Positions 46,495-63,500 of a stretch of DNA of 64,000 bases are shown here, piece after piece. The stretch comes from Auanema rhodensis (Eukaryota; Animalia; Nematoda). Each line of letters starts with the position of its first letter. Position 1 is the stretch's first letter. The position numbers were made by a program, and so were the translations under genes. The stretch lies in assembly GCA_964057225.1 (NCBI GenBank), contig OZ059899.1, positions 15,128,001 to 15,192,000 on the forward strand. The letters run 5' to 3'. Below the pieces are notes generated by a model that saw nothing but the letters and a program-made list of their open reading frames with translations, was not told the origin of the DNA and made no database searches.

Positions 46495-46633
46495 TTCCCA
46501 CAAAAAATTATTTCAAAATGAAATCCATTTTGCAAATTTCCCAAACTCAACAAGAAGTCAAGCATCCCAATAATTATTAAAAGAATATAACAACCATTTA
46601 CATCTTCACCAAAACAATAACAATTAGGAAGAC

Positions 46634-47551
46634 TTAGATCATTTTCCTGAGGAGCTTGTTGATCTGATCCTCTCTGTTTCCGAAGTCTCCACCCTCGACG
46701 AAGTGGTTGGTCTTCTTAGTCCATCCTCCGCTGGGGTTGTTGAGCTTGAAGGGCCAGAGGAAGTTGGTGGCCTGCTTGAAGTGTGGTCCAACATTAAGGA
46801 TCTCGTGAACAAGATCTTCAGTACAGATGATATCGTGCTTGCCTTAAAGAATTACTATTGAAAATTCCAATTGAAAAAACATACCAAGAGCCTTCTCGAT
46901 AATCTCGTTGTCAGTGATTGGAATACGGCGTCCGTTAACCTTAGCATATCCTCTCTTGTAGACCAAGTCGTGGACGGACTTAAGGTTGGGGTATCCCCAT
47001 GCAACGTATGGCTCGATGATACGGAGAAGTGGAAGGGTAGCCTTGTTCAACTTGACAAAGACTCCGTTGTTGATCTGACGAAGACGGAGGAGTTGGAGGG
47101 CCTGAAATACAACTTTTTAAAAAAGTTAACAATTTAATGATATACCTTTCTTGGTCTTGGGTGGAGTTGGTTGATACCTCTGATTCTGATAACAAAGGCA
47201 AGCTTTGGCTGTTCAGGTACATAGATATCTCCCTTCTTCAAAGCATCACGCTTCATTCTAGCGAGATCCTTCTGGGCATCTCTGTGCTCACGGATGAATT
47301 TCTCAGCACGCTTGAAGATAGCGGCGGTCTTTTCCTTGTTCTTCTGAACAATTAGGAAAAGTTCATAGTCTTTCATATCTGAAAACTTACAGCGCTGAGC
47401 TTGACCTTCTGTTGAATAGCCTTAGCTCTGATTTCAGAGCGTTGCTTTCTTCTCTTCAAAACGGTCTCAGGAACCTGGGGAAGTTTCTTCCTAAACAAAT
47501 TTTAAAGTAAAACAAAGTCAAACTAAGTAAATATAAAACTTACTCGACCAT
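46634..47551 (-). CDS. rpl-7: 60S ribosomal protein L7 (uL30)
   Basis: [18 protein letters not shown]-type N-terminus, then [36 protein letters not shown] and [43 protein letters not shown]. Short introns; biased codon usage. Confidence 0.97.
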
Positions 47552-49481: not shown

Positions 49482-49482
49482 A

Positions 49483-52400
49483 ATGACGAATGCTTGTCGT
49501 TCAAATGTACAAAGTTCGGAGAAGGGGCCATCTACCAGTCCACAGAAGATACAAAAGGAAGATAAGTCGCCAAGTAGAAAACGAAAACCTCGGGAATCTA
49601 GTCCCGATCCTGCCTATGAAGCAAGCTCATCTCGCCCCAAACGGAATGCACGGAAAAGCGTTCTGTTATCCAGTGGAGATTTTGAGGTTTTTTCTGGTCT
49701 AGAAGTTTAAATAGACAGTACTATTGAAGGTATTCTATCCTGGTGTGAAAACAGAAGCTCCTGACTCTGAAGAGCCAGAGACGTCAGTTCAACCCAGTGT
49801 AGCATCCCCTAGTGTGTCTCAGCCAGTGAAACAAAGACGGTTGAGGAGTGACGTAGCTGAGAAGTCTGATATTGAAGTAGATGTAGAAGGTGTTGTAGAT
49901 GATACAGAGTTTAAACGGGATGAGAACCCATTAGATGTAAGGGACGCCGTTAGTCTGTGGAATTATCGATTTTTCAGATAACGGGCACAGAGGTTGATGT
50001 TGAAGTAGAAGCTATGTCGAATATAGATGAAAATAATGAGGATATGATGATTACATTAAAAGAATCATATAGTGATACGGAATATAACGAAGATGACGAT
50101 ATTCCTCCCCGATTAGAAAAAATAAAAGGGGTTCCGTACGTAACTAATGTCATGAAATTACATAACCAATACGCTTTCAGAGAAGCAAAAAGAAAAAGAG
50201 GGCGCCCTCGTAAGTATCCCGTTGGTCAAACTCCGTTTCGTAGAACTGCAACTCTTCCCAGACCTCGACAATCTATGGGAAGACCTCCAGGATTTCCTAG
50301 AAATAAATACACTTACGACAAACCAATCACCAAAACAGAAGCTGAAAAAATTAATTCTTTTAATGTTAAACTGGTTCGTATCTAAAAGTCAAAAAATCAG
50401 TACATCATCTTATTTATAGTTTGAAGATGAAATTGGCGTCACTGAACACGGCGATGTGTACGCCACTGTTATTCCCGGTTGTTTATCCTATTTACTTCGT
50501 AAGGAAAGAATAATTGACCTTTTAACCAACCGTAATGAAATTAATGCTATGTGAGTAATCCTACTGTAATTTTCAATCGAACTCTACTCGTTTCCAGACG
50601 GCAACAAGGTTGGATGTCTCGAAAATCCCCTAGATTGCCACCTCTTGTTACTACTAAAGCGTGTTTTGCTTTTTACGTGGAGGGCGCTGCTGTGACCTCT
50701 ATCAGAGACTTGTCTAGTGATGATCTCAAACCTTGGACTTCTTCCGGTATGTTTTCAAGTGCATCACCGAATTAGTAGAACTGTTATAGTGAGCGATCCA
50801 TGTGAAGGAGAACCCGTAATAAAACCTAACGTGCGGAAACATGCGATTATGCGCCAAGGTGCTCGCCTTGTACCTTCCAAAGGTGATCCGAGAACCGCCG
50901 ATATCCATTTAACCGAATATAGTGCTTGGTTACCCAGATGTCTGCGTTTAAGGAAAAAAGTAAAATCAATATAAGTAAAGAGATCATTAACCCACCTCAT
51001 TTACAGATTTTCTATCTTGCCCGCAATGGCCACATTATTGGAAACGTTTTAATCTTATATGACTTCACCACTTCTGGTGATATCCCAGTTTTGCTAAATA
51101 TTGTACACGGAAACGAAGCATTCCGAACTCAAACGAACGATGAAGAGTTTGAGAAGGGTCATCTTCTTTTTGTAGGTGACAACGAAGATCCGGTTAGTTT
51201 TCTTCTTTGTCTTACAACTTTATGTTTTGATTGGGCGCGTCAGCATTTCATATCTGACTAGGTGCACGATTGTCTGTTGAGTCAACAGTATTAGACTGTG
51301 CCTGGTGTACTTGTTTGTTTAATGATGTTACAAACTAAGAAAAATTCAATTAAATATGTATAACAGATTATATTGCAAATGCAATAATTTCAGTTTATGG
51401 AAGAAATTGTTCCTGGACCCAGGAATGAGCGATTTCTCCAAGTTAAACCTGATAAGTATGGTTGGACTAATAATAAAAAGTTATTACTAAAATATTTAAT
51501 AAATGAGCCTTCACTATTGTAAGTCGGGAAATGGCATAGCTATTGTTAACAATTCACATACTAGGGATCAATCAGGATTTTTAAACCAGCGTATTCCTTA
51601 TCTACCTCCTCTAATTGAAACTAGAGGTGTTTTTGTCTATTTTGCGCCATCAGCAATGGTAGCTGACCAAATTCACTTTACTGGTGACGGGCTTTCGCCG
51701 TGGACATTCCAAGGTTTGTTTGTGCTTAGTTTTAATTGTTTACAATTTCCGTTTATAGGGGCGTCTGTGAATCATCGTGTTCGTACAGTTAAACGAGCGC
51801 TTTGTCAAAATTCACAAGGAGTTTTTGAAACTACAAAGGAAGATTGGCAGACAACTGGACTTGCTTTGGTTGAGACGATCACTATTTTATGTCGTTGTCC
51901 ACGGTTACGCAAAAGAGTAATGATCCATAGTTATGTTCAAAATTAATCTTAAAATTGATAGATTCTTTATGTACAAAGGCAAAATAGTGTTGTTATTGGC
52001 TATGTTTGCTTTATATATGAATACATGAGAGAAGGACCAATTCCTGAAATTATCAAATCTAATCCTAAAGCTGGATCTTTACTGTCTCCAGACGCTTTAG
52101 GACCTTTGGTTAGAGTTACTCGAATTTTGATATGTTTATAATATTCCTTATAGTTGCATCACCGTGATCATGCAGAGTTTACTCGACGCAAGCAAGATAC
52201 AAGTTCTAATACTGATGAAATGGTGGATGTTGAAGAATTAGTAGAAGAAGAAGTTGTTCAAGATGACATGCATGAGCAAGACACGACAATCGACCGGAGG
52301 GGCATGGAATACGCTCGAATGGAAGATGTGGGTGTTAGGAATTTTTTACAATACTTATTAGTGATCGATTTAATTTAGTATGAAGAGCTCCCTGAGGACA

Positions 52401-55281
52401 GTTTGGATGGTGGCTGGGATACTGAATTCGATGAAGATCTACTGACGACTCAGGAAAACCCAATGCCGTTCTTTGATGGTATCAGGCAATTAGAATCCGG
52501 GCATACGTATTTAACTGTTCGCCATAAGAGAATCGCTAGTAATATGGAGACTATTCTTGAGTACATTGCCAATTCAAACTTTGTGTATGTTTAGCAACTT
52601 TTTTGCTGAATGTAATTCATTTTTCTTGCAGCGATGAAAAGGGTTTGATGAACACGAGCAAACCAACTCATCCTCCATTGGTTCGCAATGCCAGAGCCTA
52701 TGTCTTCTTTGTAGCTGCCAACGCTGTATTCCCACATGATATTAATCGGGACGACTTTTCTCCTTGGTCTGCCAATGCAACTCGTTAGTTCTTGGTTGAT
52801 TAGAATCATATATTTATTATTTTAGCTGAAAACCCAACATGTTATCGTTCCAAAGTAAGAAAAGTGGGTGTTCTCTGTGATCCTAAAACAGGTCATTTCA
52901 CGCTACAAGATGGTGATTACAAATTGTATCCTTATCATCTTGTTGCCTTGTACAGCATACACCCAAAAGAAGCTAGACTAAGAAAGAGGGTTTGCAAATG
53001 ATTATAAGTGTAATAAACTTTAAATTGAGTTTAGATAACTTATCTGATGGATACAGATACAAAAATGATTGTTAGTCATGTTATGATAATGTATGATTTC
53101 AACACAGAGGGACCTATACCTCATATCAGTGGACCTTACGGTAAACGTAGTGTTCGTCGAAGAGGCTTGAGACGATTGGTAATAATTGTTGAACACCTTT
53201 TGCTATATTTTGTGTTCAGGGACATGACACTCATATTGATGACGTACTAGATGATGTGTCAGAAACTTCTGAATCAGAAAAAGAAAGCCCGGTTTGTTTT
53301 ACATAACTGAGATGAATGATATTAATGAAAATGTTTTAGTTTTCTGCTGGAATGCAACTTACCCCAGAGAGTGCAATTTATTTGCCGTTGGCTAACGTTG
53401 AAGATTTCTGGACAGATCGTAATAGAATTCTTCACTTCTTGGTTAATCGCCCTCATCTTCTGTAAGGATAAATGGGATAAAGCGAACACTCTTGATGTTT
53501 CAGTGAATCAATGGGATGCCTCAATACACGAGTTCCAATGTTCCCTCCTTTGATTGCCGAGAGAGGTGCTTTTGCTTTCTTCATGGATGGAAGTGAAGTG
53601 GATGTCCGCAATTTAACATGTGATGGGCTTGGCCCATGGTCAGAAAATTTACATTTGAGTAATGGTTCGTCTTTTGCCAGATGATTTTATTAACTCTCCT
53701 ATTGCAGGTAGCATAATGTGCCGTAGACCAAAATCTTGCCGAGTACCACTTGGCCTTAACAGAGATGGACACCTTAGAGTCATTAAGGGTAAACGGCCAA
53801 CTGAAGTAAGCGAATTCACAATGCATATATATGCGGCTACTCTCCCGCGTTTGACAAGATTAAAGAAAAAGGTATGTTGTTTTTCTAAGTTGGTAATTTA
53901 TATGCGAACTTTATAGGTTTACTATTTATCTAAGGATGGCGTTCAATTTGGTCATTCTTTGATTATTTATAACTATGACCAGGAAGGAGAATTACCGCAA
54001 GCGGTAAATTTCTCAAAGTAATTTATCATTGAAAAACATTTTTCTGCTTTAGGTTGCTCATGGAAACTCTGTTCATGCTGATAACGTTTACATTCGCTTA
54101 CCACCGTCACTAAAGGAAGATGCTCGAAAAATGTTGCACACGTTGTCTCCACAAGAAACTGCTAAACAACTATCTGATCGACATGGAATCCCTGTGAATG
54201 CTAGATCTGTAAGTCAATGCTCCAAATTTGTTGGGAAAATGTTTGAAAATTTAAAGATCTATAACGTCAAACGCGAAATGAATCGTTCTGTAATACCAAT
54301 GGGTCAACGGGGTGATATGAGGTATGAAGTGAAGGTCGACGGATCATTCCACGAGCTCGAAGATTCAATGGCTGATTATGTTCCTGACTGGATGTCTGAT
54401 AGAAGGCATGAATCTGTAAGTTATTAATTAATAAGGCTGTATTGAAATGTAAAATTTAGGAGCCAATAGTCACTGTTCCGGCAATGGATCTTCAAACTGT
54501 TGAAGTTGGAACTGTTAGAAGAGCAACTAGACAAGTTCGAAAGGTATAGGATTAACGAGTATTAACATGTTTGCAATATTTCAGAATGGAGTTTCCAATA
54601 CAGGAGTCGCTCCTAGAGCTCATCAAACTGAACAGATCTTCAGATATGTCAGTAACATGTTGACCACTAGATCCGATAACGAAACTTTTGATGCTATATG
54701 GAGGACATTGGTGCAGAAAAATGAAACCAGAATACTGAAAAACATTAAAAAAGTAATTATTGCAAGAAAATATTGAAATTTAATTTACTAATTCAGGATT
54801 TTGGGGTCGAAATTGTGGCAGAGCGGAGCTCGAGGAATGGAGATACGATTGAAGTTCGCGTCACTAACGCAGTTATGGATGAATCTGTAATGCAAGAACA
54901 AATATTAGAAGGCGAAATTGTAGAAGAAGAAGTAATTAATGAAGAAGATATTTTGGGAGAGGTTTCTAACCATGATAGAGTTTTCAGTTAATAGTAAGTA
55001 ACTTGTTTCAGGTTGTACTGGATACAACATTAGAAGACCCACATCAAATTTCATCGCACGAGATGGATACTCATCCTCATAATATCGAACCACACTGTGT
55101 AGCTACGATGGAAGATCATAGGGGTCACGATTTATCCGCGATGCCTACTCATGAACCGCCTGTTTTAATGCCCGAAGCTTCTGATTTGATTGCTTCAAAA
55201 GAAGAAAGTGGCGACTCTGGGAGCCAAGAAAAGCCTGCTATCGACGAAGAACCCACAATATCCAGGAATATGGAAATGTGA
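49483..55281 (+). CDS. Uncharacterised AT-hook protein (roughly 1,450 aa, estimated) with four tandem ~165-aa repeats; putative DNA-binding
   Basis: Many short GT-AG introns join the ORF-track fragments into one frame from MTNACRSN to ISRNMEM*. AT-hook KRKRGRPRKYP near 50190. Four repeats share PxxPPL...F/Y-F...DxLxPW[TS]...RL[RK]K[KR]-[IV]xY[LV]...Y[DEN][FY]xxxGx[IL]P. Acidic linkers separate the repeats. Confidence 0.85.
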
Positions 55282-56696: not shown

Positions 56697-58255
56697 ATGA
56701 AGGACGATCCACTCGTCGTAGACGAGGATCTCCTCGCTGAGATGAAAGTTTTCCGCAGGTTAGTATTGTTTTTAATTTTCTGAACTTACTTGTGTATATG
56801 AAATATTTGAATCTAAGCACGTATCTTATTCCTATTTGCATACGTGTGATCACGTCACGTCTGCCAGCTATCATTTTCTCATTTTATTTTTTTTAAACGC
56901 TGACTGGTTGTGTTACGATTCAATCTTTTTCACTTTTCAATTATTTTTTTCCTTTACAGATCTGCTTTTGGTGCTGTAGTCTTGTCTACTGTAACGATAT
57001 TAGGATGTATAGTACTTATTCCTATTGCATATCAAAATGTGCAGCGCTTACATACCACACTTCTGGATGATGTTCATTTCTGCCAGATGAGAAATCGTGA
57101 TCTATGGAGTAGTATCTTCATAGGGGATCATTCTCGTCTCAAGCGTTCTGTAGAATATCTAAGCGAACAACCAGAAGGAAAATGGCTATTTGGTCACTTC
57201 ATTACATCTAAACCTCAGTGAGTAATAATTATCTATGCATCAATCAAGAATTTCGACTTTATGACCTACTATTTTGACATTTCATTTAATGTTTATTTTA
57301 TGACATTCTTTAGAATTTTTTTGAAGTTTCTTAATTTTAGCCGGAATCGTCGTCAAGACGGTAAATACCCAACTCCTGAAGGCGCTGCTTATCCAGCCGC
57401 TCCTGAAGTTGGAGGCGCTTCTTACCCTGCTCCTGCTCCTGCTCCTGCTCCAGCTCCCAGCTCATATCCAACTCCTGAAATTGCCGTAAGAAAAGCATAG
57501 CACTGATCTTTTGATGCATTATATTATACTTTTCAGGCCGCTCCAGAAGAAAATATGTGTTGTGGTTGTACAGTTGGACCACCCGGTCCACCAGGAGATG
57601 CTGGATCTGATGGAGATGATGGTAAAGATGGTAACCCAGGACCTGATGGAACTCCAGGATCTGGTAAGTTCATATGAAATATTTCCTTTATGAAAATATT
57701 TTTAACAGATGGTGCAAGTTCTGGTGGTGATGGCTATTCTGAAGGAGCCGGAGCACCTACTTGTGTTCGTGAATGCCCACCCGGACCACCAGGACCACCG
57801 GGAAGCCCCGGAGAAAAAGGTGCTCGCGGATATCCTGGAGACATGGGAGAACCAGGAGCACAAGGAAAGCCAGGAGAGAAGGGACCACCAGGACGAATGG
57901 GACCACCAGGACCACCAGGATATCCCGGACGTCCAGGAGAGAAGGGAGACGATGGAAAGAGCATTCCCGGAAACGCCCCACCAGGCCCACCAGGACGTCC
58001 AGGAGAAATGGGACTTGCTGGACCACCAGGACCACCCGGAGAAAAAGGAAAGCAAGGCGGGCCCGGACCACAAGGACCAACAGGTGACCAAGGAAACCCA
58101 GGTTAGTAAATAATACGATATAAAAAAATATTTATTTACTTATAGGACCTTACGGTAAGCCTGGTCCACCAGGAAGTGAAGGCATGGAAGGAGCTCCAGG
58201 ACCAAAAGGAGGATGCGATCACTGCCCACCACCCCGTACTCCACCTGGATACTAA
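56697..58255 (+). CDS. Nematode cuticle collagen, 364 aa
   Basis: Exons 56697-56758, 56960-57217, 57341-57485, 57537-57663, 57709-58101, 58146-58255 (1095 nt). Has an N-terminal TM/Col_cuticle_N region, RLKR and RNRR sites, [13 protein letters not shown], Gly-X-Y blocks and C-terminal [15 protein letters not shown]. Confidence 0.95.
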
Positions 58256-59753: not shown

Positions 59754-60509
59754 TTAGAAGATTGGATCGGGGAACTCGAACACAACATCTTTTCCAGTAA
59801 GCTTTCTGTAGACGGAGGAGAAGACGTCAACCTTGTGCTCAACATTGCATTGCTGGGACTTATCGAGGTGGACCTACAAAATCATAATAGGTTCTCATGT
59901 TAATCAATAAAAGACAAAAATAAAATACAAACCTTGTGAACTTTCTTTCCATCGAGCTTAACTCTGATTCTTCTTCCAACGACTTCAGCGGGGAAGACCA
60001 TCTCGTCGAGCCAGGCATCGTGAACGGCGGTAAGAGTTCTGGAGCGTGGTCTCTTTTGCTTTTGTGGCTTAGCCTTAGATCCTCTCATTGGCTTGGGAAG
60101 AATTCTTCTCTATAATTAATGTAAATATAATACAAGAAAAAGCTAGAAACAAACCTTGGCAAGAACAAGAACATGCTTTCCTCCGAATTTCTTCTCAAGT
60201 TCACGGACAACTCTAGTCTGGATCTTGTGGAATTGCTTGAGTTGTGGGACTGGGACGTAGACAATGATGACGGATTTGTTTCCTACGTCAATTTCCTAAA
60301 AAAAAAATTTTTAATTAAAGCAAGACTAATCGAAAAAAAATAAAAATAAATAATTGAGCACTTACTTTGACTCCAACAATGTAGAGCTCACGAAGTTGGG
60401 CCTTGATATCAGAGGTGGCCTCGAGCTCAACGAGGGCCTGGGAGACTTGCTTCTCCAGCTCAGAAGGAGCGGAGTTGTCGGCTTTCAACAACTTTCCTAT
60501 TACGACCAT
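59754..60509 (-). CDS. rps-7: 40S ribosomal protein S7 (eS7), 193 aa
   Basis: Exons 60509-60366, 60295-60155, 60109-59933, 59873-59754. Contains [46 protein letters not shown] and [15 protein letters not shown]. Confidence 0.97.
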
Positions 60510-63500
60510 CCTTTAACCCAGTTGAACACTAAAACTAAAATTGAAATACTAAACTTGAATTATAAAAACACAAATTAAATCCGAACGAAAATATTATAAC
60601 AGATCTTAAAATGAGGCATTGAGGCTTAGAATAACTTGATCATTAAAAAATGAAGGTATCACACTATTTTATACACAATACCCTGTTTAGCTAAACAAGT
60701 TCTTATCGTAAAAATTAACAAAATTTCGACAACAATTATAGTAAACGACGAAAAAACGTTAAAATCCCAAAAGATCTCTAAATGTGTCTATGGAAAATAT
60801 AGACGTACGATAGCACAGAAAGAAGAAACAGGGTGATCGCGTCGGGACCTTTTCAGCGCAGCGAGTTTATTACTAGCGCTAATACCAAAAAAAAGGAAAA
60901 AGTACAATTAGCTTTGATTGATATAGATGTATCTAATGATTTTAATTATTTAGAGGGTTGAGGGAATGATTACTTGATTTAATATGTATTAAGAAAAAAA
61001 TATAATTGCTATGGTGATTTATTTATTTTTCTATTTTAAAGAGTTGTAGTAAAAAAAGTTTTTTCATATTTAAATAATAGTTTTCATGGCTTATATAAAG
61101 GATGATGAGAATAAAATTTTTTTCATAGGATGCTGTTCTGCAGCATTGTCTGAGTAAAAGTTGAAACGTGCATAATACTTCAAAATGCATGTTGTTCGGC
61201 CTAGTGATACGAGGTTCAGCTGAAGTTTTAAGCTTTCCTGAATACCTGATTTGGTAGAAAAAACTTTCTATTCATTTTTTACTTCTAGTTTGGTGAGTGT
61301 CGAATTGTATTAGTTCTTATCTTTTGTTTCCTATGCCATGTATGCTTATACTTTGCATTATTGGTAGGTACGTCTTAAGTTTAGAAAATGATTTTTTCAC
61401 TGCTATGCTCGTTTATCTATTGTTTTTCTTTTCTGAATACACGTCAGACTAATGAAGTTTTACTATATTTAACTTTTAAGTAAAGTAGCTCTGTTATGTG
61501 TTTGTTGCTTTTAGTTGTTTGAAAATTCAATAAATGAATTGCAACCAGTCGTTACGTCAGTTATGATCAAAATGATATGTTTGCATATGGTGGATTTAGT
61601 CGGCTGTCTCATATGTTGCAACGTTTGTTTAATTCACGCAACGCTAAGGCATTTACTGGTATCACCCCAAATGTAAGGAATTGTAAAACTTACTGGCTAT
61701 TCATTACATTTAGCCTAACATTGGGAGTGCTGACCAAATGTGGAAAAAGAGCTTAGAGGACAGTTGATGAATGCCATTGTACTACATTTCCCAAAGAGTC
61801 AAGCTCTTCCATATTTGACATGTTTTAGCGGATATCTAAGAATTATCGTCTTTAGACGGCAGTTTTATTTGATTCTTCACCCATATATTCGTAACAATTA
61901 GCCAAAGGTTCATTTTAGCTTTTTCGCGAAAAAGTATTCGTATTAGGAATTCTTATCGTGAATCTTCTTTAATTGAAATGAGATTTGTTTTTGTTATGAT
62001 AGTAGAGATTCTTTATTTTAACTTTTTTTTCCTATTCAAGCAGGTGTGCTGTGACGCTATCTTGCTCTGAAAAAAGATTCTAGCATATAAAACGCATATT
62101 TTCTTCCAGAAAAATATAATTTTTGCATAATAACTAGCTAGAAGAGATTTTAGAAATTGGCTATTTTATTTTGTTTTTGTCTGTAAACATCAAGAGATCA
62201 CGTTTTAGTTTTGAATGAAAAATACATGTAATACAATGTATTCAATGTACTGCATTTCAATATTTTTCATCTTCTGTTGGCTAAGCTTTAGTTTTGAATC
62301 TGCTTTTTACTGTGACCAGTGCATATATCCACTTGGGATGAGCCTTGGGAAGTTTATAATCAAGTTTGTTGTATACTCTCAATTCCATTTGATATATTGA
62401 TTCAATTTTGTCTTTTCTGCCACACTCAATGAACATCTTCAAATATACAAGTAGCAAATTAAATGATATCTTGGAAGCTTTGATCTCAAATTAAGGTTTT
62501 GAACCATCTCCCAGATCACTTCTCTTTGTCTTGAAATTTCATTATATTTGTGATGTGTAGCATTCTTCTGAGCAGTGATGATGGACGTTTGCCAAAAAAA
62601 AGATTTTGCTGCCATCAAAAACTTATTATGGATTTTGAATATTAATAATCACAGTATTTATATGAAAATACGTTTTTTGCTTTTATATACATACATATTC
62701 CGCTTTTTAATGATGCTGAACCCACAAATCCGCCGCATGTTAGCCTGCAATTGCTCAGAATTAATTCTCAGAAAACCTTAGTGGTATCAGTTCTCTTGTT
62801 GTTTTCAAACTCGACTTGTCAGGTTATTAGTTTTTGCAGTAGGAATATGACTAATATGAGCAGGTCGAAGAAAAAAGGCTTGACTGAAGTGTAGGAGGGA
62901 GGGAAGAGGGTGGAGAGGAGACGTAAGATCACGTTATGCTTTCAGACGACACGAGAACTAAGTTCATGCACATCATTCATGTGGAAGATTTTGAGCAATT
63001 TCGTTAAAAAAAACGTCCAAGTGAAACGATGAGGTGATGAGAATATTTTTGAACAAACTACTACTAGCATGAAAGTTCGGCTGAAGAGACAAGACTGAGC
63101 AATTTGGATGGTAAATTGAAAGCAATCTTTTCGCAGCTTTTTATGCTCCGGATTTTGATTGAACTCTCCGAAAAAGGAGAGTTCTAACATCCCCTTGTCT
63201 TCTTTTCCGGTTTTATAGACCTTCTGATCTAATAGATTCATTGTTCATCATTGTTCTTCAGTTTTTTTTCAAACTCAGCTAAAACAATAAGCTCTATGTT
63301 ATTTAAAGTAAAGTCTTATTATTTTTTGATATATCTGAAAAGATTCATATAGAAATTCATGTTTCTCCTCTATTCACAATTTGGGTAGATACGTTCAGTT
63401 CACACCACTGAGACTGTCTTTGTTCTCCAATTGTTTCAACGAAGTAAGAAGAATTTTTCCCCCAAAAAGATCCTTTGTGTGTTTCAGCACCTCGTTGTTA

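Follow-up and report, generated by a model that had tools for sequence, protein, structure and literature searches.

The question raised by this locus is what kind of protein is encoded by a large gene of the nematode Auanema rhodensis that carries four tandem copies of one domain, and whether these copies stem from a transposon. The gene lies in a stretch of 64,000 nt (assembly GCA_964057225.1, contig OZ059899.1, positions 15,128,001-15,192,000 of the forward strand), which we call the window and to which all coordinates refer, in a eukaryotic, intron-rich region of about 37% G+C. An initial annotation had described the product as an AT-hook protein with four modules resembling CG-1 and Mutator DNA-binding domains and had regarded it as a candidate domesticated transposon protein. 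The analysis presented here favours, at a probability of about 60%, a nuclear, multivalent DNA-binding factor in which four basic, CG-1-like beta-sheet readers would be combined with an AT-hook, a three-helix module and acidic regulatory linkers, and finds transposon domestication unsupported. What is new is the predicted placement of the repeated domain, DUF7747, in the CG-1/WOPR/NAC fold group, the gene family itself being already catalogued as a domain of unknown function (DUF).

An exon model was built manually by joining open frames at GT-AG sites. The coding region and its four repeats, each delimited by Pfam PF24927 and by family profile envelopes, are as follows (aa, amino acids; pI, isoelectric point).

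49483..55281, + strand: whole coding region, 27 exons, 1487 aa, manual GT-AG model with the frame open throughout
50368..51111, + strand: DUF7747 repeat 1, aa 268-454, exons 4-7, pI 9.1
51187..52069, + strand: DUF7747 repeat 2, aa 480-661, exons 8-11, pI 9.2
52463..53145, + strand: DUF7747 repeat 3, aa 761-943, exons 13-16, pI 9.0
53286..54070, + strand: DUF7747 repeat 4, aa 977-1160, exons 17-22, pI 8.7

The repeats belong to DUF7747 (PF24927), a catalogued and uncharacterised domain, and each of them comprises about 185 aa. Nine single exon pieces matched PF24927 with E values of 8e-8 to 1e-30 (32.7-107.1 bits), all above the gathering cut-off of 25 bits and far outside what chance would produce, and the best of them was the open reading frame 51503-51946 in repeat 2 (E 1.2e-30). 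A family profile marked four complete copies in the spliced model, and in a six-frame scan of the whole window it found pieces solely at 50420-54018 on the + strand. All motif blocks by which the four repeats had originally been recognised were present in the spliced protein at the expected places: the PPL block at aa 327, 537, 815 and 1033 (window 50638, 51605, 52672 and 53544), the D[DG]xxPW[TS] block ending at aa 360, 570, 847 and 1065, and the RL[RK]K[KR] block at aa 415, 621, 902 and 1121, followed, past an intron, by an I/V-x-Y-[LV] strand. Also, the noted VHGN was found 3' of repeat 1, and AHGNSVHADNVYIRLP and the helix-turn-helix (HTH)-like SPQETAKQL...NARS|IYNVKR come after repeat 4. 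The span of 50190-54290 first given for the gene does hold these motifs, but the gene itself is larger. Its coding region starts with the ATG at 49483, immediately 3' of a tttcag acceptor, and ends with the TGA at 55279-55281; introns measure 41-51 nt except for one of 201 nt (51193-51393), which separates repeats 1 and 2.

The view of an intron-rich host gene was borne out by the 27 exons and by the alignment of aa 1-1392, end to end and at about 49% identity, with proteins of Ancylostoma ceylanicum (P0026) and Haemonchus contortus (P0072), and the two doubtful junctions (exons 1/2 and 16/17) are consistent with the orthologues. Identity to the Caenorhabditis proteins amounts to 36-46%. The window's own protein gave no match to itself in the protein collections searched, and four RNA runs were indexed with 0.62 of the locus words, a share that is about what would be expected from the exons alone.

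Pairwise identity among the four repeats of the window is 26-31%, and each repeat shows four exons of similar lengths with intron phases 0, 2, 1 and 0. The identical phases in every repeat indicate a quadruplication at the genomic exon level, in agreement with what had been proposed. When 15 four-repeat proteins were compared, repeats with the same index were 43-50% identical between species and those with a different index 25-28%; therefore, the array arose before these nematodes diverged, and its copies have been constrained separately. Across 71 repeats, P56, P57, D82, W87, R145 and Y167 are invariant. The invariant D-x(4)-W (usually DGLxPW) is followed by a basic loop and by a nearly invariant RLRKK strand. 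Cysteine or histidine zinc ligands were not found among the invariant or near-invariant columns of the 71 repeats, which thus lack the zinc finger of WRKY, GCM and FAR1 proteins proper.

Because the spliced window sequence has no reference, orthologous repeats were folded. A first AlphaFold2 model, calculated from the alignment of the 71 repeats with Ancylostoma repeat 4 placed first, reached a predicted local distance difference test score (pLDDT) of 93.2 and a predicted template modelling score of 0.89; in it, three short helices lie between an N-terminal strand and an antiparallel sheet. A composite of C. elegans repeat 4 and the tail behind it, modelled independently from a different alignment, reached a pLDDT of 85.9. 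The best solved-structure neighbours of the repeat model were Ssr4, GCM, WOPR and NAC, followed by WRKY, and with the independent C. elegans repeat 4 model Ssr4, GCM, WOPR, NAC and WRKY were again the only beta-domain matches among the top rows. An ESM-Atlas shape search with the first model returned a CAMTA cluster carrying PF03859 CG-1 at a template modelling (TM) score of 0.50 over 119 residues and 3.3 Å, in a single search in which both sides are predicted models, and all other rows ranged from TM 0.32 to 0.39. Holm (2022; PMC9252788), who extended the WRKY/GCM1 clan (CL0274), placed Ssr4, WOPR, NAC and CG-1 together in a zinc-free subgroup. As in that subgroup, a helix precedes a five-stranded antiparallel sheet in the models, and its known members are the nearest structural neighbours. 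The repeat fold is thus predicted to belong to the CG-1/WOPR/Ssr4/NAC subgroup of the WRKY/GCM1 clan, and on this modelled fold DUF7747 adds a new family to a known fold group.

Outside the repeats, the protein contains the following parts.

49624..49668, + strand: N-terminal basic motif SSSRPKRNARKSVLL, aa 48-62, kept in most of 25 aligned family members
50188..50214, + strand: AT-hook core KRKRGRPRK, aa 208-216, a canonical R-G-R-P flanked by basic residues
52070..52462, + strand: acidic linker between repeats 2 and 3, aa 662-760, pI 4.05, with a conserved GGWDTEFDEDLL patch
54071..54283, + strand: basic three-helix HTH-like module, aa 1161-1215, pI 9.7, split by an intron at 54209-54256
54609..54817, + strand: C-terminal helical module ETFDAIW..L..KNE.R.L..I..DFGVEI, conserved across the family
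54818..55278, + strand: acidic C-terminal tail, pI 4.2, poorly conserved

The AT-hook of the initial annotation is recognised by its motif and not by the hidden Markov model, since Pfam AT_hook scored 14.1 bits (E 0.043) on the window, below its cut-off of 17.4 bits; RGRP is kept in about 80-90% of 25 relatives and is present in the C. elegans chromosome X protein (P0089). In the HTH-like module, the family follows the pattern Y.RLPP.[IV]R[DE]E..LL...P.EVAK.L...G..V....LY..RR, and the model of the C. elegans orthologue showed three confident helices. No sequence match to this module was obtained in Pfam or the PDB, and profile searches of PDB sequences, for the repeat and for the tail, gave noise only. 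The part after repeat 4 is best described as a putative, generic three-helix HTH-like module. The 48-nt intron inside it is in frame and stop-free, and its retention would add 16 residues; splicing is the expected form because orthologues lack such an insert. All four repeats and the HTH-like module are basic (pI 8.7-9.7), whereas the linkers are acidic. The motif SSSRPKRNARKSVLL is, judged by its sequence, a possible nuclear localisation or docking motif. Apart from DUF7747 and AT_hook, Pfam gave one further match in the window pieces, a sub-threshold one to RFX5_DNA_bdg (E 0.0091).

In the mechanism that we propose, each basic DUF7747 domain would adopt the helix-plus-beta-sheet fold and read DNA by its sheet face and a recognition loop. 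In the zinc-free subgroup, DNA is read in this way and a D-x(3)-W motif holds the loop (Holm, 2022; PMC9252788). In DUF7747, the spacing between D82 and W87 is one residue wider, and this D-x(4)-W, the basic loop and the basic RLRKK strand would be the counterparts of the subgroup's DNA-reading elements. The AT-hook could provide an extra minor-groove contact at AT-rich DNA, the three-helix module behind repeat 4 a further DNA contact, and the acidic linkers might act in activation or regulation. The fixed order of four domains that have diverged in different ways suggests that long composite or repeated sites would be recognised. Gene structure, domain content, conservation and the confidently predicted fold with its structural neighbours are observations, and nuclear location, DNA binding and the manner of recognition are inferred.

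Several observations weigh against such a DNA-binding factor. The folded models represent orthologous repeats and not the window's own spliced sequence. In the Atlas shape search with the composite repeat-4-plus-HTH model, no row exceeded TM 0.34 and CG-1 was not recovered, which is taken as a probable effect of the two-domain query. The N-terminal domain of Ssr4, the top PDB neighbour, shows no strong electrostatic DNA-binding signal (Holm, 2022; PMC9252788). The C. elegans chromosome I protein (P0044) has no AT-hook, no contig from the four RNA runs was placed on the locus, and the searched literature holds no experiment or functional study on any family member. At the sequence level, the Pfam models for CG-1, FAR1, WRKY and MULE (Mutator-like element) gave zero matches in the 71 repeats even at E<=10. 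A direct profile comparison with CG-1 weighs in the same direction. For this comparison, metagenome contigs were scanned with a short degenerate nucleotide pattern encoding W[RK]K[KR]KDGKT, a motif that served as a probe only; of the 120 loci found, eight spliced transcripts with a complete CG-1 domain, five plant-like and three arthropod-like, were used and 112 were not, and all eight domains were validated by Pfam CG-1 at E<=1e-50. With hhalign, DUF7747 and the eight CG-1 domains gave a colinear alignment of 97 columns with D on D and W on W, which was not significant (probability 0.9%, P 0.059, 13 of 200 column shuffles scoring as high). By repeat type, the score was reached by 0/50 shuffles for repeat 3, 2/50 for repeat 1, 7/50 for repeat 4 and 14/50 for repeat 2.

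How far, then, does the likeness to CG-1 go? The resemblance that had been noted by eye held at the level of the fold, where the models probably place DUF7747 beside CG-1 (ESM-Atlas TM 0.50 and solved-structure neighbours), and failed at the level of sequence, where neither Pfam nor hhalign supports membership. DUF7747 and CG-1 of the CAMTAs share, in colinear order, an N-terminal helix, a P..PP..G with a hydrophobic strand, DG..W, an aromatic strand, a basic R[RK][KC].Y[WY]L strand and a hydrophobic ..V.Y strand, and both are zinc-free. They differ in the spacing of D-x(4)-W versus D-x(3)-W; DUF7747 also has an extra N-terminal strand, and its insert separating the W from the basic strand is longer. 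In addition, DUF7747 occurs in four tandem copies and is not accompanied by the TIG, ankyrin and IQ regions that complete the CAMTA architecture. Residues of CAMTA3 needed for DNA binding are W26, W75, H88, YY102/103, W118 and Y132 (PMC10417383). In the weak hhalign alignment, DG..W pairs with D82/W87 and the tyrosine of YYAHGE pairs with the conserved Y of L.eY.A.LPR, the other CAMTA3 positions being unreliably aligned. The motif resemblance is consistent with the structural match, at a level that is not statistically established, and a true, very diverged CG-1 homologue is a tentative and somewhat doubtful identification. If it were correct, the family would provide the first known case of four CG-1-type DNA-binding domains arranged in tandem in one protein; its members might read long composite or repeated sites jointly with the AT-hook and the HTH-like module, and C. 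elegans and parasitic strongylids would possess an unrecognised class of sequence-specific transcription factors.

In the structural check that had been recommended, which was performed with AlphaFold2 on orthologous repeats, Ssr4, GCM, WOPR, NAC and WRKY emerged as neighbours by structure search, whereas Foldseek against the PDB returned nothing for either model (best E 0.03, thioesterase and lipocalin rows with TM<0.3 and root mean square deviations of 8-19 Å). A likeness to CG-1, WOPR and NAC could also arise by chance convergence of a small helix-plus-antiparallel-sheet domain, in which case DUF7747 would be an unrelated, nematode-specific fold; we regard such convergence as quite improbable. 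The alternative that we rank foremost accepts the fold and denies the function: within a chromatin complex, the DUF7747 domains would act as scaffolds or bind other proteins, in the manner of the Ssr4 N-terminal domain of SWI/SNF and RSC, and DNA would be contacted through the AT-hook and the HTH-like module only. Such a role sits poorly with four repeats that are all basic (pI 8.7-9.2), with a D...W pair and a basic RLRKK strand that are invariant or nearly so across 71 repeats, with the company of two other DNA-binding elements and with DNA-binding CG-1 as the best Atlas neighbour. We consider it unlikely on these grounds and retain the multivalent DNA-binding factor as the preferred reading.

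A domesticated transposon protein, in which the repeat module and the HTH would go back to the DNA-binding N-terminal part of a transposase of the Mutator-like (MULE/IS256) type, had been the original proposal and now appears very improbable. The WRKY/GCM1 clan includes the MULE and FAR1 DNA-binding domains, according to Babu et al. (2006) as cited in PMC9252788, a FAR1 DNA-binding domain was the sole named lead of a language-model Atlas search (score 0.75), and three of the ten rows in the Atlas search with the composite model were IS256, Transposase_mut or MULE clusters. These rows, however, reached only TM 0.22-0.32, and the FAR1 lead lies under the chance level of its search, as do the hypothetical proteins of Mucoromycota at 0.77-0.78, and was not repeated with C. 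elegans repeat 3. Transposase HTHs were found among many HTH matches, but Myb, SANT, homeodomain and TEAD fit the same helices equally well. As the initial annotation had already stated, no DDE core and no terminal inverted repeats are visible: no match to MULE, Transposase_mut, DBD_Tnp_Mut, FAR1, SWIM or DDE (PF10551/PF00872) was obtained in window pieces, seven full-length relatives or the 71 repeats at E<=10, and the region of 47-58 kb holds three short AT-rich inverted pairs of 18-21 nt, none of which bounds the gene. The only transposon-related Pfam matches were isolated and confined to single members (Transposase_29, E 0.022; THAP9_C, E 0.21). Together with the lack of invariant cysteines or histidines for a zinc finger, and with a gene that sits in a conserved neighbourhood and tracks the species tree, these results leave a link to Mutator DNA-binding domains solely through the shared and very broad WRKY/GCM1 clan.

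The phyletic range was determined with HMMER by querying 1.84 billion representative proteins exhaustively with repeat 2, which yielded 21 matches. One of them, a bacterial cadherin-like protein (P0014, E 4.6e-12), was rejected as spurious, since a later profile search found no DUF7747 in it. All other named matches are from nematodes, namely Strongylida (including Ancylostoma, Necator, Haemonchus and Nippostrongylus), Heterorhabditis, Caenorhabditis, Diploscapter, Pristionchus, Mesorhabditis and Steinernema hermaphroditum, so that, as far as sequence searches tell, only rhabditid nematodes and Steinernema possess the family. Nearly all full-length members carry four DUF7747 copies, orthologues score 390-735 bits against PF24927 in four or five stretches, and the strongylid orthologues show 87-96% identity across the domain region. 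In seven full-length relatives, Pfam detected DUF7747 only, and the UniRef names OTU, ULP_PROTEASE, SET, RRM and SWIB 'domain-containing' given to family members were disregarded, as no Pfam match stands behind any of them. A divergent C. tropicalis relative (P0083, A0A1I7TAE6) combines two DUF7747 copies with PF25100 ('Wsv526'), and in a C. japonica gene model (P0057) a reverse-transcriptase/endonuclease element (PF00078, PF03372) either interrupts the gene or is fused to it.

In a maximum-likelihood tree calculated in quick search mode, the window gene is sister to Heterorhabditis plus Strongylida and the topology follows the species phylogeny. The duplication behind the two Caenorhabditis paralogue groups falls inside that genus, and the window gene is therefore co-orthologous to both groups; it represents, in this rhabditid, the single-copy orthologue of the C. 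elegans pair NP_001293167 (chromosome I) and NP_510349/Q93520 (chromosome X). C. elegans has three family members in all: NP_001293167/8 on chromosome I, NP_510349/Q93520 on chromosome X and a 110-aa fragment gene on chromosome IV. The latter (P0018, NP_502820) covers no more than the first half of a single DUF7747 domain and may be a fragment or a pseudogene-like relic. NP_510349/Q93520 is presumably F16B12.6, and a Haemonchus annotation calls its orthologue 'Protein F16B12.6'.

An expression data set of C. elegans embryonic lineages, which has been used to infer regulatory networks, includes F16B12.6 as a reporter gene (PMC11318059). In the literature searched, F16B12.6 appeared only as such a lineage reporter and as an in-situ probe, and no paper mentioned DUF7747 or the C. 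elegans accessions of the family. The AT-hook factor ATTF-6 (NAR 2025) was considered as the C. elegans chromosome I orthologue and rejected, since its CRISPR donors give a start (MDEDIAE) and an end (...PIKPTTLPPSS) that occur in no DUF7747 protein. The gene attf-5, a possible relative, sits at X:0.79 Mb. We presume that the family has been treated as transcription factors in C. elegans work on account of the AT-hook only.

The relatives in C. elegans, strongylids, Pristionchus, Mesorhabditis and Steinernema share with the window protein an N-terminal RPKRNARKSVL motif, an AT-hook in most cases, four DUF7747 domains, the HTH-like tail and the C-terminal helical module, and they align with it end to end at 43-50% identity. 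Caenorhabditis differs in possessing two paralogues instead of the one gene of A. rhodensis, and its C. elegans chromosome I protein lacks the AT-hook that the window protein has. Multi-domain DNA binders built from repeated non-zinc-finger or THAP modules exist in nematodes, for example HIM-17 with six THAP domains. HIM-17 resembles the DUF7747 protein, as proposed here, in joining several copies of one DNA-binding fold in one chromatin-associated protein, and it differs in the fold employed.

About 750 of the roughly 1500 residues of these proteins form a strongly conserved fourfold domain that has so far been unexplained. Its predicted placement turns this domain into a testable hypothesis, in which each repeat would be a beta-sheet DNA reader whose key residues would be the D and W of D-x(4)-W and those of the RLRKK strand. 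The fold group has so far been known from plants, fungi and CAMTAs, and DUF7747 would give it a further branch that is metazoan and restricted to one lineage. Hookworms and Haemonchus have kept the family, and no member from outside nematodes turned up among the 1.84 billion proteins searched, which may interest parasitologists.

The DUF7747 gene has rab-11 (+) and rpl-7 (-) as upstream and a cuticle collagen gene (+) and rps-7 (-) as downstream neighbours.

46600-47400, - strand: rpl-7-like exons, upstream of the rab-11-like gene
56900-58200, + strand: cuticle collagen gene with Gly-Pro-Pro repeats, open reading frame 57690-58106
59900-60510, - strand: rps-7-like gene, downstream of the DUF7747 gene

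The last coding piece of the rab-11-like gene, on the + strand, ends at about 49027, some 450 nt upstream of the ATG of the DUF7747 gene, and both genes may belong to one operon, with trans-splicing at 49482. A predicted C. auriculariae protein (P0047), in which the DUF7747 orthologue is fused to a collagen, points to a conserved collagen neighbourhood and is itself probably a mis-merged gene model.

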